Positions 45,528 through 54,624 of a stretch of 64,000 nucleotides of DNA are shown here, in pieces. The notes below the pieces were generated by a model. It saw only the letters and a list, made by a program, of their open reading frames with translations. It had not been told where the DNA came from and did no database searches. The DNA is taken from assembly GCA_016748015.1 (NCBI GenBank), contig JAAOMT010000276.1:248001-312000 (forward strand), written 5' to 3'. How positions within the stretch are numbered: the stretch's first letter is position 1; every line of letters starts with the position of its first letter. The position numbers were made by a program, and so were the translations under genes. This stretch comes from Geosiphon pyriformis uo1. Taxonomy: Eukaryota > Fungi > Glomeromycota.

Positions 45528-45663
45528 TATTACTAACGAAAGAATTTGAATACAGATACACAAATATAGAAAAATAAAAAGATTGTTTATAAGAGTTGGC
45601 TTCTAAATTTAGATTCGTTACCTATTTTTGTTGTCTGACCTATATATAGGTTTTTTGATATTT

Positions 45664-45718
45664 GGGGCGTGCTGCAACAAAACCAGACAAAGTGAACATT
45701 TGACGTCATTTGGGCATC
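45664..45718 (+). repeat. Left TIR (45 bp perfect, 52/55 extended)
   Basis: ggggcgtgctgcaacaaaaccagacaaagtgaacatttgacgtca(tttgggcatc); preceded by attt. Confidence 0.97.
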
Positions 45719-46079
45719 GGGCCCGAAAATTTTATTTTCGCTGTTGCTTTGTCCGTAGCTTTTTAATAATTCAATATTCACCATATAAAATAGTTACAGT
45801 AAGTAGGCCAAAAATATAACCCACAGTCCTTTGCTTTTATATTTCGCTATTTTTTTTTTTTTTTTTTGTTAACTTAATCTGATGCTTTGTTTTATGTTCC
45901 TGAGCAGCTTTGACCGTGACAAAGTCATTGTTTTTTTAAATCACTGACATTAGTATTAACGCAATAACGATAAATATTAGGTCCAGTTACTTTCTATTGC
46001 ATTTTAGCACAAATGCTTTCGCTATACGAACTTGCTTCTTAAGAGCCAGAGAACTAGAATAACGAATAAATTATCATTT

Positions 46080-46600
46080 ACCTATATGTCAAAATCAGGA
46101 TACTAGTCTCGCAGGATTTCTCGAAGATGCGGAAATCAACGCCCACGTATTTAGCATTTGGAAGCTTACCAAATGTTCCATTAAATTTGGCGGTTTTCCT
46201 TGGAGGATATGAACTTTTTGCTTAAGAAATAATAATTAGTTCACTGATTAAACTTTCCTTAAAGCTAATAATAACTCTTTGGTGGGAGATAGAAAAGGAG
46301 TAATATTATGCTACTATAAATGGTGGTGTTAACATAAGACATACTTTTTTCAGCGCCGTTTTCCTTCCTCACTTCTTTACAAAGGTTTTCATAGTGTTGC
46401 GCTTTTTCTCCAAGCTTTTATTTACGCCTGAACTAGTGTCTTCTAATTCTGCGTTTCCCAAGATTCCGTTAAAAACTCGGGGAAAAGAGTTTTCCTTTTC
46501 AGATAACTCGTAGTAAATCATTAGTCTCTGGGGTTGTAAATATTCTAACAATTTACTGCATACCGATATAGTACTCTCATTTTCTTTTTCCTGTGAATTT
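46080..46600 (-). pseudogene. Possible degraded, intron-containing coding remnant inside the transposon
   Basis: Two open stretches (..LLEYLQPQRLMIYYELSEKENSFPRVF.. and AKSSYPPRKTAKFNGTFGKLPNAKYVGVDFRIF) separated by GTATGT...AG intron-like sequence; no family recognised. Confidence 0.3.
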
Positions 46601-47015
46601 AATTAATTACATGTATATTCGAACAAACGACAGAGTAAACAAGCGGTGGCTTAGCGTGGGTGACGTAACATGAAAATTTTTCACATCATACATCAGCCGC
46701 TATGTATCAACAACGCGTCTTCTCCAGACCTCATCTTGTCCCCATGCACCTGCCGCACCAACCCGTGTTATAAACGCAAGTTGCCCATTATCAGTTTCTT
46801 TGGTCCATTCTATTCTCTTCACCATCGCAAAAGTTTTCTACATTCTACACGTAAGTTCGACATAGGCCGCGTTGATTACCTCTTTGCGCACGCGTGGTGA
46901 AATTTTGCTCATTTGCTGACAATTTACAGTTTGCCTGGTTGCCCGCGCCATTTTAAATATTAGGCATTTCTCAAGTTGAGTGCTCTTCTAGTTTATGCTT
47001 TTACTAGCATCCATG

Positions 47016-47403
47016 GTATCCTACGCTCGTATGGTTAGCCCTGGACCGATGTTTGGATTAGAGGTCGCAGGATAATCATTATAACTCGCTCTCTGTGGCT
47101 TATAATGCCTACTCCTGGATGCTCTCTTCCAGTATACCAAACAACTAAGTATCCTACGCTCGTATGGTTAGCCCTGGACCGATGTTTGGATTAGAGGTCG
47201 CAGGATAATCATTATAACTCGCTCTCTGTGGCTTATAATGCCTACTCCTGGATGCTCTCTTCCAGTATACCAAACAACTAAGTATCCTACGCTCGTATGG
47301 TTAGCCCTGGACCGATGTTTGGATTAGAGGTCGCAGGATAATCATTATAACTCGCTCTCTGTGGCTTATAATGCCTACTCCTGGATGCTCTCTTCCAGTA
47401 TAC
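47016..47403. repeat. Perfect tandem repeat, 133-bp unit x 2.9
   Basis: Units start at 47016, 47149 and 47282 (gtatcctacgctcgtatgg...); no mismatches seen. Confidence 0.96.
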
Positions 47404-47498
47404 TAGCTTGTTAACGGATGCTATTGCTTTGTTTTCATTGCGATAAATATCTACTAGCAGCAATACTCATAAGGCTTTTTTCCAGACTAAACAATAAT

Positions 47499-49960
47499 AT
47501 GGATTTCGACCATTATGTTGCCGATTACCAAATGATCTCTGATCCAAAAAATTGGAGCGCTCTGGATTGTCTACATTATCTCAAAGAACGCGTAGATTTT
47601 AGCTCTGATAGCAAAAATGACATCCTTAAGGCGTTTAGAAGAAGATTTAAGAATGTCAGTCAATCTACAGCAATACTAGCTGGACCCAAAAAGAAGGCAT
47701 GCGACCGCCAAAGAAAGTTTCAAGAGAAGGGAAATCATCGACTTCTTTGAAAAGCAGGACCAAGCATTCGCGATTGTATGTAATTGCCCGTTTGCAGGAT
47801 TGGTTTGTTACACTATATTTCAATAACAACTATTGTTTATAGCGAAAAAATGACAGGGATGTTTTCCAAGCCGTTGATAGCGCAAAAGCAGCGATCGCAA
47901 AGTCCGCAAAAACGCAAATTATGAGAGTGAGCACCACTTCGTTTTGTTTTTCAGTAGGATGAGTGTACTTTGGCTTTTCATATCGATATTGACATGATTT
48001 AAGACGTTAGACGGGCCTATAATAGAAGGCCACATCAGTGTTGCTGGGCATAAGCGTGTAAGTCAATTGTTCTTATTAATTCATTTGCTCCTATGAAATG
48101 GTGCTAAATATATTGTATTGGCATAGCAACGAGATCCTGCAGAAGATGATACAGATGACGATACCGAGGATGATACGGAGGGCAAAAACAAGATACTGAA
48201 AAAAGTGAGTATTAAGCATGTTATTATTCTGGAAAAGTCCTTCCATTATTACGCTCTAAGAAGATTCCGTTACAGAATACGCTCCCAAGGCTTCAGCGAA
48301 AAACCAACACTATTACATGAAGATACAGTCACCCATTCCGCTGAGCATGACGATTGCAACGCTGAGGGCGAAACCCACAGAAATGTGGCAGAGGATGAAA
48401 ACGTAACGGTAAGAGTTTAAGGTTCCGTAGCTTTAGTTGGGCCCATTTGGATTTTTCGACAAAAGGAGAAATTAACATTAAGGTACTTACTTTACACCCG
48501 ATTTAAAGGAGGATATCGACGATCAAGCCCTCTTGGCGAGGAATCTTTTAGACGAAGCGCAAGAAATTCCATTAGAGTTAAAAAACCTTCTTGACGCCTT
48601 TCAAACATATTGTCAGGGATCAGAGAACTTGTTGACGAGCAACGGTATAATAGACCTTAGGCCGTCGTCAGAATTTGTCCTCTCCTATACGGACGAATGT
48701 GATTACAACGAGTTGCTTGAACGTACCTTCAATCCCATTGATGAGATATTCCCCGAAGCAGCTTTCACTTTTCTCCTTGAATTTTTTTCCAAGGTACGAA
48801 TTATCATAAAAGAAATAGTAATAATGATTATCGTAAATCCGACTTATCACTCTTCATTTTCTTAATAGAGTCTAACTTGTCAGCATTGGTATGACGAGAT
48901 CGAGAGATTGCTGGATCCAGAACATGATCCATTTATTAAAAATATGAAGAGGTTCATGTTTGAGGTTCTTCCTATCTTGTAGGTAACTGCACTGCATTTC
49001 TCTTAAGAAGATATTCTAATGTGGTTTTTCTTTGCTTCAGTCTTGATGCGTTTGCTATGGGATCTGAAAACCCAATGAAGGAAAGGAATATGGGAGAAGA
49101 GGAGTACATGACAGCATTCATCCATCCCATGTTGAAGAAAGCGCTTGGAAGATTTGCGAACCTGCGATATAAGCCGTAAGTGAAAATCGTTTCCGATTGC
49201 ATTTGTACCTAAACAACTTACTCTTTTGTACTCTGCTAGTGGTGATAAAGCGATAGAGGCGTCTGCATACCGAAAATCAATTACAGCGCAATCGGGAAAT
49301 CCGGATAGAGCAGACGGTATCGCCTACACGTCAAACAAGAAGCCTTACGAAATATGTGTGGTCGAAGGGAGCAAACCTTACGATACTGAGAACGGAAAAG
49401 AAACACAAGATTTCATCCAAAACACCCGTGCCGCAAAAGATATGATTAATTTTCTAGTAACTCAAGAAGTCAAGCAGAAAAGGGCTCTGCCAACATTCTT
49501 TCGAACCTTCATGGTCCAAAGTTTCGAGACAAGTCTGCGCTTCTATTTTATGGATTACCTGAGTAAGTACTGTATACGTATATATATTATATATTGCATT
49601 GTTTACTGAGTTTACGGAAACTTTTTTTAGGTTTTTACAGAATATTTGAGATTGAAGCCTGTGAGCTCCCAGTAGATCTGGCGGAAATAAATTTGTTTCC
49701 TTTTCTTTTCCGTGCGGTCATTACATGGGCGGTAAGTCCAAGAACCTTAGGCCGACGCAGAATTAGTTTTTAGTAATTACTTTTAACTCCTATTCTAGAT
49801 CCTGGCAGGAAATACTGATAAAGAGTTTCAAACATTTCGGAATTCCAAGCGAAGCTCAAGAGTCAGTAATGCACATAATTTGAGAGTGCTTGCTCGATTG
49901 CAGCATAACAAGGCACGTCCAGGCAACAAAAAAAGCTTAAAAATGAAAAATATAATTTAG
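47499..49960 (+). pseudogene. Spliced fungal cargo gene with a C-terminal PD-(D/E)xK nuclease-like region; frameshift in exon 1
   Basis: Many GT-AG introns. Exons include MDFDHYVADY..., EEEYMTAFIHPMLKKAL and GDKAIEASAYRK..NPDRADGIAY...YEICVVEGSKP. Frame change near 47700. Confidence 0.7.
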
Positions 49961-50698
49961 ATTCATAGTAGCTTATTCATTTAATATGTAGTGACCATAG
50001 CGGAAGCATAATCTGTTGTGATAATCGACTCTTTGCATATAGTAGCCCCCGGGATTAAGACTGAACGTGTATTTGTATTTATGAGACGCGCATTATGAAG
50101 GGTTGACTGTATTGGATATATATACATAAATGTTATTTCGTAATAATAACTTGCGTCAGGGGAGTACAAACAGTTTGTAATATATGGATATCTCCAAACT
50201 ACGTTGAAATTACCAAAGCTGGTAGACATAGTAAACACCATAAACTGTACTATTGATTTATGATTCAAGCTTTGATACCGTAGTATAGTGTACGGTTGTT
50301 CTCTATAATCGCTATTTCATTTCTTGCGAGAACGAGAATTTTCTGGGCTTAGATTCAACAGACAGAATTCCGATGTGCGCAAACTCCGATATTTATTATT
50401 GTTACCATTTCATGAAAATGAAGGGTTTAGATACGTGTTTCGAGATCAGACTTAATAAAAGAAACGCAAGTAATTTGGATCAATTATAAAGGCATACAGG
50501 GTTATCCCTCCATGTAACGACCCTCTTATTCCTCTATTTTTCTTTTTTTCCTTGGTTCTTGAAATGATTCTGCCAACATCCGTTTAAGAGCTTTTATATA
50601 CACGGCTACCCTATGTATAGTACATAATGAATGCACAATATTATTAAAATTTTACAAAACCAGACAAACTGACATAAAATATATATATATATATATAT

Positions 50699-52479
50699 GT
50701 GGTAGACGACACAATTATTATGAACGAATATGAGAAAGCTCTCCGGTTTTTAGAACTAGGCTGTGGATGCGGTTGCTCGGCTAAGCTGCCCAAAGAAGAA
50801 TTTGCTGAATTGCGAGAAGACTTTCAAGCGCTAACAAAATCCGAACAAGACATTTTCTTAATGGCCCAACTCAGGCCCATGGATGGGGGAGCGATCAGTA
50901 CTAGCCGACGTCTCAAGAACAAGACTCGCATCAACAAGAGAACTATTTACTGCTGAAGTCGTAATACCCCTATTTGTCAAAAAACCTACCTCAATATGCT
51001 TGGTATTGGTCGCAATTATTTTGAAAATATCAGAAATCATCTGCTAAAGAATGGTCTTCTACCACGGGTCCATGGTAATGTAAAAAGAATGCCACGGTGA
51101 AAAACCAGGATGGTCATCAATATTGACGTGGCTACCGCGGTCAAGAATTTTTTGCTAAATTATGCTGAAGTTCATGGTTTGCCCAGCCCGGTAAGAAACG
51201 TCAACCGAGTTACCCAATCAATCATCTTTTTACCAGCGGAAATGAGCTATAAGTCTGTTCACCGTGACTTTTTGGCTGGTCTAGAAGAAGATAGTAAATT
51301 GCGTGCCCTCAAATATGATGCATTTCGCAAATTATGGCATCAGCTTACCCCGTACATTCAAATTATGAGTCCTCGAACTGATTTATGCGATACCTGTCAA
51401 CAGTTGCGGAATGACATGCAGTTCAAAGCCCGTAAAGAGGAAGAGGCCCAAGACTTATTGAAGAAGTATAAAGAACATCTAGCCAAAGCCAAGTTAGAAC
51501 GAAACTATTATAACAAAAATACCAAGTTGGCGGAAGAACACAGAAAGCTTGTCGACCAGAATTATTCTGTTGTTTCAGTGAAAGGCAAAATACCATACTG
51601 CAGCATGGACGCTATTGCTCACTACAGTTACGACTGAGCCCAAAATGTCCATGTACCCCATTCGGATCAACAGATTGGCAAGGTGTATTACCTTAGTGCT
51701 CGCAAGGTACACTTGTTTGGTGTCCAAGATGAAGCGGTGCGCGAGCAAATTAATTATGTACTGGATGAGAACGAACTTCTTGGAAAAGGTCCGAATGGTA
51801 CGCTAAGCCTGGTCTTTGATGGAATCAAACAATTGAATAAAGGCGAGAAGCACTTGAAGGTTACTTGCGACAATGCGGGAGGGCAAAACAAAAACAATAC
51901 GACTATTTGGTTTTATCTGTACTTGGTAATTGTTGGCTATTACGAAAGTATTGAGTTAAATTTTATGGTTCCCGGTCATACCAAATTCAAATGTGATGGA
52001 AGCTTTGGTCTAATTAAAAGACTTTACCGTAAGACCACGGTAGATTGTGTAGATCATGTGGTAGAGGTAGTAAAAAGGTCCAGTATTGCCGGACTAAACA
52101 AAGCTCGGCGTTATAATGGTAAAGAGGGTTTCCAATATCTAGATATTTTAAGTAGTTTGGCGGTCTATTTCAAGAAGCTGCCGGGCATGCAGAAGTTTCA
52201 ACATTTCCTCTTTACTAGTGCTAATCCCGGTGTAGTCAAAGCCCAAGAAACCGCTAATGTCCCTTCCAGGAATTCAAGCTACTGAAAACCAGTAAACTCG
52301 AGGCTTCAAAGATCATACAAAAAACCAAGGCCTTATCATTTCCAATGCTGACCCCTTCTCCAATGAAACATGAGCGGCAAGAATATCTTTATAATTATAT
52401 TCGTCCTTTTGTCCGCGATGAATTCAAAGATATTACATGCCCAAGACCAACCTATACTGGTAATGAACAAAACATTTAA
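50699..52479 (+). CDS. Sola-type DDD transposase in genetic code 4 (TGA=Trp); one frameshift at about 52259
   Basis: ORFs 50699, 51110 and 51683 share one frame, broken only by TGA at 50954, 51098 and 51635. Motifs: CGCGC, CQKTYL, PRVHGN, PRTDLCDTC, SYDWAQ..P..QIGKVYY, CDNAGGQNKN, FMVPGHTKFKCDGSFG. The shifted frame gives RQEYLYNYIRPFV..DITCPRP. Confidence 0.9.
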
Positions 52480-52595
52480 CCAGTTTTGCACGTCACTGTA
52501 TCCTTGCTGCCATTAAGCTTAATAAGTTTAATCTCTCAACTTTTCAAAGCAAAAAAATACTAAAATAATTTATAACTTAATATAAATAAAATTTT

Positions 52596-53569
52596 ATGAC
52601 AAACATAATCAATGAACTCCAAGAGAGAAACAAAAGTCTAGCAGAAGAAAATAATCAATTAAAAGAAAAATTTGGTGTTAATCAAGATAATAATCTAACT
52701 CTAACAGAAATTAGACAACAGTTAGTTGAAGCATTGAGAGATATGCGTTATACTAACAATGCTGATGAAGAATTACTGGATGACATTATGACCTATTATC
52801 CTGGGCAAAACTGACCAAAATTTTGTGAAAATTTCCCAGTTAAGTTAGGTCGACAAATTCATATTGAATGCTTATACAAATTCATTATGTATTGAAAAAA
52901 TTCCTTTAAACGCCACCAAGAAATTAAGGAGTTAAAGCATGAAAAGAACCAGTTGACCTTAAAAAGTGAGGTGCTTGAAAGGGAACTTGAACATTCTGAG
53001 AAGCAAGCTAAACACTTTAAAAAAATCATCACAGAAATCTTACAAGAACATTATGAATATTTCATCTCAACAGATGAAAATGATAAGCTTTCTTTTACCA
53101 TAGACACTGAAAAAAATGAAAATTGACTTCAAGAATTAATAGACAAAATTAGCAACAAAGAGCATGAAGGCCTTATTGCTGAAATTATTGAAAGTTGATT
53201 AAAGAGGCTCTTGAAACTAGTAAAAAATGAAATGATGCTCAAAAAGCAGAGTTAAGAGAAGAAATTAGAGATAAGTCTGAAGTCATTCGAGAGAATCGTG
53301 TGATAATCGAAAACCAAGAAAAAGAAATCCAAAAATTATGGGAGGAAGCACGGGATAATTCAGAATTGGTGAGAGAAGCTCGGAAGATAATTCAAAGGCA
53401 AGAAATGTTACTTAATTTATCTAATAAACCTTTACCTTTCTTACCTAAGAAGTCAAACAAATTTAAACGAATAGGAGTGGCAATAAAAAGAAAGTTTTCC
53501 CAATTAGCAGAAAATGTTAAGTTTCAAAGACGAGAAATGGTTGCTCAGATAGAAGTTAAAGTCAAGTAG
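52596..53569 (+). CDS. Mollicutes-endobacterium-like coiled-coil protein (code 4); one frameshift at about 53200
   Basis: TGA at 52812, 52893, 53124, 53196 and 53228 read as Trp. No introns. Ends KPLPFLPKKSNKFK...MVAQIEVKVK*. Confidence 0.75.
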
Positions 53570-53571
53570 CG

Positions 53572-54185
53572 ATGAGAGAATTGCTTTATACAATCTTGGA
53601 GTTAGAGGAGTGAGGCAAAGACACAACGTGTGATTTTTGCCCTAACTTTAACAAAAGAAACAAGGCAGTTTGTCAAATCAGAACTCGTAATAAAGTGAGC
53701 CATAGGATAGTTAGTAACGCTTGTGCCTGTGAGGAGGGTAAGGAAAAATTTGAAAGTGGTGAATTGCCTAAATGCGAAAGATGCGGAGAGCTAAAAACTA
53801 GGATGGGTTTTCACTATAATTGTTCTGAGAGCAACGAAAAAGAACTTCCTTCTTTACCCAACGAGGAAAGATCTTCCACAAGATACGAACGCCAAATAAA
53901 CTCCTTACAAGAACAATTAAATGAAGCCGAATGAACCATGAGAATTTTATGGAGAAGTCCGAGGAATGAAGTAAAAGGCAAAAACAGGAGTTATTGGATC
54001 GAATAAAAGAGCTAGAAACGGAAGTAGAAAGATTAAAAAAGCAAACTCCCCAAGAAGTGGTTAATGAAGTAGAATCTTATAAAGAAGAAGTGGCTCGATT
54101 AAAAACTCTGTTAGAAAAATTGAATTCTCAACAGAAGACTCAAATTGAGGTTAAAAGGTGACCTTGATTGAAAATAAAGAAGTAA
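53572..54185 (+). CDS. Mollicutes-endobacterium-like CxxC plus coiled-coil protein (code 4); one frameshift at about 53935
   Basis: ATG 2 bp after the previous stop; CDFC and CERC motifs; TGA at 53611, 53932, 53967, 54159 and 54165; ends TQIEVKRWPWLKIKK*. Confidence 0.75.
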
Positions 54186-54200
54186 TTAAAAAAATTAGAA

Positions 54201-54255
54201 GATACCCGAGTGACGTCAAATGTTCACTTTGTCTGGTTTTGTTGCAGCACGCCCC
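54201..54255 (-). repeat. Right TIR
   Basis: 54211-54255 is the exact reverse complement of 45664-45708; followed by attt. Confidence 0.97.
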
Positions 54256-54624
54256 ATTTAATAGATTAAAAAATCTGCGAATTAAATTTGAACATTAATT
54301 TTAATGATGATGATGATGATGATGAGATGTTAACCTATCATTCACAAAAATTCACGAAAAAAATATTTGACAAAGCTTCCTTCCTTTCAGGTTACTAAAA
54401 TACTCAGTTTAAAATAAAATACTTGTTCCCTAAACCAAATTTTTTACCTGTCCTGTAAAAAAGTCAAAAATTCAACTATTTCCTCACATTAATTTTGTTT
54501 ATGCCCTCGGTGAATTCACAACTAATTTTAGGGCTTTTTGGCAAATGGTCGAATCCTTCAAATTTCCGCGCAAGAGTGCCGAGCAAGGGGAAAAAAGTTT
54601 TTTCATCACTTTTGTAAGTTTAAA

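Follow-up and report, generated by a model that had tools for sequence, protein, structure and literature searches.

The window, the whole 64,000-nt stretch of Geosiphon pyriformis DNA that was analysed (contig JAAOMT010000276.1, positions 248,001 to 312,000), contains a transposon at 45664-54255. The 56-nt arms of its TIRs are 95% complementary, and the element is flanked by a 4-bp ATTT duplication. Between the TIRs lie a variable cargo region, a transposase gene and two accessory ORFs (Table 1).

Table 1. Features of the transposon in the window (window coordinates).
Feature	Position	Strand	Remark
Left target-site duplication ATTT	45660..45663	.	Identical ATTT at 54256-54259
Outer left TIR (starts GGGGCGTGC)	45664..45718	+	Same termini in further genomic and soil copies
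Variable cargo, decayed standard-code ORF fragments (e.g. 47418-47750, 48533-48865, 49226-49609)	45719..50640	+	Absent from other element copies
Internal TIR-like motif, ~25 to 45 nt upstream of transposase start	50654..50672	+	19 nt, 95% complementary to right TIR
Transposase pseudogene (DUF7869, DDD)	50697..52479	+	TGA at 50954/51098/51635; TGG at 51335/51908; TAA stop at 52477
Catalytic Asp codons (predicted)	51632, 51869, 51995	+	DDD triad
Accessory ORF2 (coiled-coil)	52596..53569	+	TGA at Trp-like positions; one frameshift near 53170-53250
Accessory ORF3 (Cys-rich N-terminus, coiled-coil, ends ..QIEVKR-TGA-P-TGA-LK)	53573..54190	+	One frameshift near 53930-53990
Outer right TIR	54201..54255	-	Pairs with left TIR
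Right target-site duplication ATTT	54256..54259	.	Pairs with 45660..45663

The transposase gene was earlier proposed, in a sequence-only reading of this DNA, to consist of three ORF fragments that join if TGA is read as Trp, with TGG used as well. Both points hold. A single reading frame over 50699-52285 is interrupted by exactly three stops, all TGA, in the contexts YC-TGA-SR (50954-56), PR-TGA-KT (51098-100) and SYD-TGA-AQ (51635-37), and the same gene has TGG at 51335 and 51908. The last 70 codons sit in another frame. The paralogs L002 and L003 read ..ANGPFQEFKLL.. unbroken at this place, so one G is missing after 52258 in the window copy; a second, independent set of contigs from this organism has the identical sequence at the frame break. 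A 38-nt intron at 52232-52269 (GT..CTAAT..CAG) was considered as the cause of the frame change and rejected, because L002 and L003 are uninterrupted there and carry the extra G. Compared with L002, the window copy has 2 extra bases that put the upstream ATG at 50697 out of frame; the in-frame ATG is at 50720. The sequencing runs that contain the stretch are DNA only, and one run marked 'RNA?' behaves as DNA contigs. The transposase and both accessory ORFs have one frameshift each, and the window copy is dead whatever the code, code 4 included.

The CDN..GQNKN and GHTKF..D..FG motifs are unbroken in the translation, as had been stated, and their columns are conserved. The piece at 51638-52282 matches the Pfam family DUF7869 (PF25273) with 63 bits (E 3.7e-17; cut-off 26), and relatives carry the same domain. 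In an alignment of 49 sequences D432 is invariant and D311 and D390 are nearly invariant. The AF2 model of P0166, the full-length translation of soil copy L132 as given by the metagenome pipeline and 83%-identical to the window transposase, has a pLDDT of 87.7 and an RNase H-like core, in which the catalytic Asp residues lie on strand 1, after strand 4 and on the helix that comes next. Its fold matches (IstA, TnsB, integrases, Mos1) are weak.

The Sola superfamily of DNA transposons is said to go back to Bao et al. in 2009. Sola elements have been reported from Rhizophagus (PMC5751038). The DDD motif, the TIRs, the 4-bp target-site duplication (TSD) and the bacterial relatives fit the proposed name 'Sola-type', an assignment made by features and not against the Sola1/Sola2/Sola3 references. 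Sola and the present element share a DDD transposase with an RNase H-like core, TIRs, a 4-bp TSD and members in bacteria and eukaryotes. The element differs from Sola in that TGA stands for Trp in a standard-code host, at least two extra ORFs follow the transposase on the same strand, and fungal cargo lies within the TIRs.

The Geosiphon pyriformis assembly (128 Mb, 792 contigs) contains more than 100 matches to the window transposase. The 112 copies studied comprise 32 Geosiphon loci (31 paralogs and the window locus) and 80 soil-metagenome copies. The complete copies L013 and L015 are flanked by ATAT/ATAT, and each element copy with readable flanks sits in fungal nuclear-type DNA; the copies are thus shown to be true transposition products in nuclear DNA. 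When TGA is read as sense, intact copies encode a transposase of ~585-610 codons, ORF2 and ORF3, all in the same orientation. Intact ORF2 has 239-312 codons, with 5-6 TGA and 0 TGG in L013 and L163 and with 6 TGA and 3 TGG in L155. Intact ORF3 has 188-223 codons and begins 6-9 nt past the ORF2 stop in L013 and L163; neither ORF has introns. L013, L015 and L132 likewise keep the internal TIR-like 19-mer ahead of their transposase. In several lineages another TGA-bearing ORF, with a near-start DxDx(C/T) motif, replaces ORF2 (L003:2320-3297, L014:8223-9200, L138:10787-11734, others); its pieces gave no Pfam match and no named relatives, nor did the 21-kb loci of Mollicutes-related endobacteria (MRE) contain a match. 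In one soil contig two family elements stand ~350 bp apart, right TIR then left TIR (L160:5466-5877 and L163:6707-7118).

Upstream of the transposase the elements carry different genes. In soil copies this cargo ORF1 has 724-939 codons with 0 TGA and 9-11 TGG, and it is just 23-30% identical between elements whose transposases are >90% alike. Its nearest atlas clusters are eukaryote-only; a Pfam search of the family gave no match, with a weak Crinkler hint only. It looks like swapped fungal cargo. Fast-evolving examples are found at L138:6711-8882, L155:390-2696 and L163:1-2817, and fragments of such ORFs occur in the window at 47418-49609. ORF1 was also considered as a 'recoding factor' and rejected, being variable and swapped between elements with near-identical transposases.

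The neighbourhood of the element in the window is ordinary fungal nuclear DNA, with genes for a DED1-like helicase (with a GT-AG intron), HMG-box, BTB and arrestin proteins. The helicase gene and three other host ORFs terminate in TGA, and tubulin has no TGA-only pattern. The nuclear code of Geosiphon is therefore standard, and TGA is a stop in the host. On this basis the family genes would be untranslatable in the fungal cytosol.

Comparison of the copies reveals how the TGAs are used. In twelve copies of 70-89% DNA identity, the window's three TGA and two TGG columns alternate between TGA and TGG only. No stop besides TGA at these five W columns is present in 13 of the 32 Geosiphon loci, and 59 of the 80 soil copies have no stop outside them. 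Over the whole soil set the W columns hold 170 TGA and 110 TGG, and the other codons hold 9 stops in 35,559, a pattern that chance would not give by a wide margin. Not one of the 112 copies is a TGA-free member of the TGA clade. The frames read through each TGA to TAA or TAG (code-4 ORF scan of L013, L015, L132, L138, L155, L160 and L163). Among the twelve copies, pairs have a dN/dS of 0.05-0.16, and their dS reaches from 0.26 up to saturation. Because column 86 is TGA in nearly all copies (23 of 27 readable Geosiphon copies), purifying selection acted on the TGA-containing frames themselves. The A-ending fraction is 0.59-0.60 at W columns vs 0.69-0.89 at conserved K/E/Q columns, and the per-column heterozygosity is 0.35-0.41 vs 0.17-0.27 at conserved Lys/Glu/Gln columns. 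The A-ending share at W columns thus resembles that at K/E/Q columns, so TGA and TGG behave as synonyms.

The residues of the relatives agree with Trp. Within the family the alternative to TGA is TGG, and in outgroups the residue is W/F/Y or hydrophobic, not Arg: column 213 is almost invariantly W, column 404 is often W, and column 86 is F/I/V/L/W. The third TGA had been said to adjoin the first catalytic Asp, where an aromatic residue is expected, and the outgroups indeed show F, Y or W at this column 313. There are two exceptions: the indel-region column 134, where the sister clade has N, and CGA variants, which are rare. Since the core genes are under strong purifying selection and TGA and TGG are interchangeable, TGA is read as Trp wherever these genes work. 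TGA is thereby shown to be a sense (Trp) codon for the transposon family, and the recoding claimed by the sequence-only reading is supported by the purifying selection, by the synonym-like behaviour of TGA and TGG and by a homolog, described below, that shares the TGA columns and lies on an MRE chromosome.

These data bear directly on one alternative, an ordinary decaying pseudogene in which each TGA arose on its own as a nonsense mutation, TGG-to-TGA or CGA-to-TGA. In favour of it, the window copy does have frameshifts, and older Geosiphon copies additionally contain TAA, TAG and CGA-derived TGA stops. However, even copies whose dS is saturated share the TGA columns, omega is 0.05-0.16, and TAG never takes the place of TGG in clean copies. 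The nonsense-mutation reading is refuted for the family, and we give it practically no chance.

Translation in mitochondria has to be weighed as well. TGA is read as Trp in fungal mitochondria, so the genes might be expressed there under code 4, or the copies might be inserts of mitochondrial DNA. However, the contigs around all copies found are of nuclear type, with TIRs and TSDs; no way is known in which mitochondria could translate nuclear transcripts; and the homolog mentioned above is in an MRE chromosome, not in mtDNA. A mitochondrial explanation is very improbable.

Relatives of the transposase were found in bacteria, in AM fungi and in endobacteria. The bacterial relatives are 34-39% identical and belong to simple 2.1-kb IS with 39-nt TIRs and one ORF. 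In a scan of GTDB genomes they occurred in Desulfobacterota, Stappiaceae and others and in no Mollicutes, but the latter means little because the two homolog-carrying MRE MAGs are not in that collection. Five IS copies in the chromosome of a Desulfobacterium MAG (L021-L024, L056) are like the element in their 34-39% identical transposase, in TIRs ending in a G/C run and in having one long ORF. They differ in being ~2.1 kb long with a single code-11 ORF, whereas the fungal element is 7-8.6 kb long, has accessory ORFs and cargo, and branches with eukaryotic clades. AM fungi also carry standard-code DUF7869 clades that are ~40% identical to the TGA clade, such as P0175 of R. irregularis, a 660-aa single-exon ORF with 4 TGG and 0 TGA. 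In the endobacterium-free R. irregularis DAOM 197198, standard-code clades only were present among the named matches. P0192 and P0220 (NCBI, labelled Nitrososphaeraceae archaeon MAG) are DUF7869 transposases that branch within a clade containing an R. irregularis protein too; their contigs are just ~2.5 kb long, so mis-binned fungal DNA seems likely.

The endobacterial homolog, P0304 of Candidatus Moeniiplasma glomeromycotorum, was found by a single-sequence search with P0166; an MRE protein was not among the proteins listed by the first profile search (A2). P0304 spans aa 10-583 and is 52-59% identical to the nuclear copies. It has TGA at columns 86, 213, 313 and 404, CGA at column 134 and one frameshift. 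Its locus, on 124.8-kb contigs in two MAGs with 30% GC, has type III restriction-modification genes on one side and type I on the other, and no TIRs and no accessory ORFs were found there. MRE genes at this locus use TGA and TGG in a ratio of 46:15, and MRE genes on L212 terminate in TAA or TAG. The homologs whose search had been suggested were thus found in part: intact standard-code homologs exist in other AM fungi (R. irregularis), and a code-4 homolog exists in MRE but is frameshifted and so not intact. A eukaryotic-type LRR and protein-kinase gene with 16 TGA and 5 TGG lies at L212:18923-20944, on a Ca. Moeniiplasma contig; it is a host-like gene at home in code 4. MRE are known to evolve fast, to be rich in transposases and host-derived genes, and to take part in gene exchange with their hosts (PMC4916391).

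A quick ML tree places the MRE copy as the sister of the nuclear TGA-clade copies as a whole, with a support of 99. The two in turn form the sister group of the standard-code clades of AM fungi, and the bacteria lie outside. Sub-lineages of the TGA clade are common to several genera: Geosiphon copies share 94% with Ambispora and 86% with Diversispora, and two Geosiphon copies differ by 24%. No near-identical copies were found in the Geosiphon genome, where the nearest paralog has 89% DNA identity (omega 0.05).

The Arg codons separate the genes of the element. The AGR:CGN counts are 71:15 in the accessory ORFs, 85:37 in neighbouring MRE genes, 49:78 (intermediate) in the transposase, 43:102 in cargo ORF1 and 22:88 in host genes. 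The accessory ORFs differ from the host genes with Fisher p = 4e-19; their Arg codons are MRE-like, not host-like.

It is conceivable that the family is nuclear only, that its mRNAs are translated in the cytosol with UGA suppressed to Trp, and that the MRE homolog stems from a host-to-endobacterium transfer. A conditional suppressor tRNA, a near-cognate tRNA-Trp or an mRNA-specific recoding signal might do so, and might serve self-limitation of transposase dosage. This agrees with several observations: all flanked copies are nuclear with TSDs, the cargo was taken from fungal-type genes, many of the nuclear copies have intact frames when read in code 4, and the TGA clade falls with the standard-code clades of AM fungi instead of the bacterial IS. 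Moreover, transfer of genes from host to MRE is documented (PMC4916391), and the MRE contig holds the fungal-type kinase-LRR gene. On the other hand, TGA is used freely as a synonymous codon, for up to 5/5 W in the transposase and 6/6 in ORF2, which release-factor competition should penalise. The codons after TGA at the five columns are AGT/GAC, AAA, CAT, GCC and TTT, and they vary in ORF2 and ORF3, so the following base may be A, G, C or T; a fixed leaky read-through context such as UGA-CUAG is absent from the transposase, ORF2 and ORF3. TGA is a terminator in host genes, a polycistron whose ORFs are spaced by 6-9 nt cannot be translated in a eukaryote, and the Arg codons of the accessory ORFs are MRE-like. 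The element itself brings no tRNA or known RNA family: neither the window nor any of ten element copies contained a tRNA, and six elements had no Rfam families. A pattern search of the genome for UCA-anticodon tRNA gave control-level matches only, and no such tRNA was present in the 30 loci examined. The same kind of search gave no match for tRNA-Trp, possibly due to introns, and the Rfam tRNA scan of the genome covered 63 of ~7,500 candidates. In view of the freely used TGAs, their varied contexts, the close spacing of the ORFs and the codon usage, we consider cytosolic suppression unlikely, though it is the main rival of an endobacterial origin. If the fungus does decode these UGAs, it has an unknown recoding mechanism.

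We regard it as fairly probable that the element is a Sola-like transposon that has adapted to a code-4 endobacterium and has repeatedly inserted into host nuclei. A fungal Sola-like transposon would have entered endobacteria, adapted there to code 4 and to an operon-like gene order, and persisted and diversified in endobacterial populations. From these it would have inserted repeatedly into the nuclei of fungal hosts, where its genes would not be translatable and the copies would decay. Such an endobacterial origin fits the lack of near-identical genomic copies, the operon-like order of the genes and a codon usage like that of MRE. Against it stand the nuclear surroundings of every element copy with readable flanks and the intermediate Arg codon usage of the transposase. 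Moreover, the lone MRE homolog is frameshifted, has neither TIRs nor accessory ORFs and is at most 59% identical to nuclear copies, so that no active endobacterial source is seen; the bacterium could also have received this gene from its host. No bacterial 16S was found in the Geosiphon assembly.

TSD-flanked insertions, including composites with TGA-free standard-code cargo, show transposition inside the nucleus, and a transposase is needed there. The composites argue for some activity within the nucleus. One source of such a transposase would be a standard-code fungal paralog that catalyses nuclear transposition of the TGA elements in trans, which is compatible with either origin. Intact standard-code DUF7869 transposases, such as the P0175 mentioned above, do exist in AM fungi. 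However, at ~40% identity to the TGA clade a common recognition of the TIRs is doubtful, the absence of a TGA-free member among the 112 copies speaks against it, and mobilisation in trans leaves the purifying selection on TGA-bearing frames unexplained. We consider it rather improbable. The endobacterial origin may extend to an active inter-domain shuttle, which we put forward tentatively, as a possibility short of an even chance. The element would replicate like an IS and be expressed under code 4 in MRE, its transposase or transpososome would enter nuclei, fungal genes would be picked up between the outer TIRs, and horizontally transmitted endobacteria would spread it among AM lineages.

No described counterpart of a selected transposon family in a code unreadable by its nuclear host was found in the literature searched. 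The case resembles the known gene transfer between AM fungi and MRE (Naito et al. 2015; PMC4916391) in that genes are common to both, the MRE contig having the transposase homolog and the kinase-LRR gene. Those known transfers, however, concern single genes in the bacterium, whereas here a bacterial-code mobile element has >100 TSD-flanked nuclear copies in several fungal genera. Programmed read-through (retroviral gag-pol, UGA-CUA peroxisomal isoforms) likewise involves in-frame stops within a functional frame, but it has one stop in a fixed context and yields a minor product. The element has 2-6 TGAs per ORF in any context, and these exchange freely with TGG. If the endobacterial reading is true, the family is a concrete and testable vehicle of DNA traffic between MRE and Glomeromycotina nuclei, possibly also between fungal lineages. 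If the shuttle is true as well, genes would travel with it between bacterial and eukaryotic nuclear DNA and among fungal species.

In annotated Geosiphon, Ambispora, Gigaspora and Rhizophagus gene models the family genes are cut to fragments or given invented introns around the TGAs. In the models P0035, P0069, P0101 and P0052 (Rhizophagus, Ambispora, Gigaspora) the segments with Trp columns are partly or wholly skipped, apparently by invented introns, or the models end at TGAs. Standard gene callers fragment TGA genes, and the family is therefore mis-annotated in public genomes.

A 29-nt sequence, TTCATTAAAGCAGAGTAGTTGTTCAAGTC, occurs with close variants in at least 17 places in G000 (e.g. 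C531:406383, C535:3033, C565:19269) as part of a repeat family, with no tRNA by ARAGORN. Finally, a small contig (G000:C202:239-10491) carries a dense cluster of tRNA genes that repeats at ~9.8-kb spacing and may be organellar or bacterial DNA.
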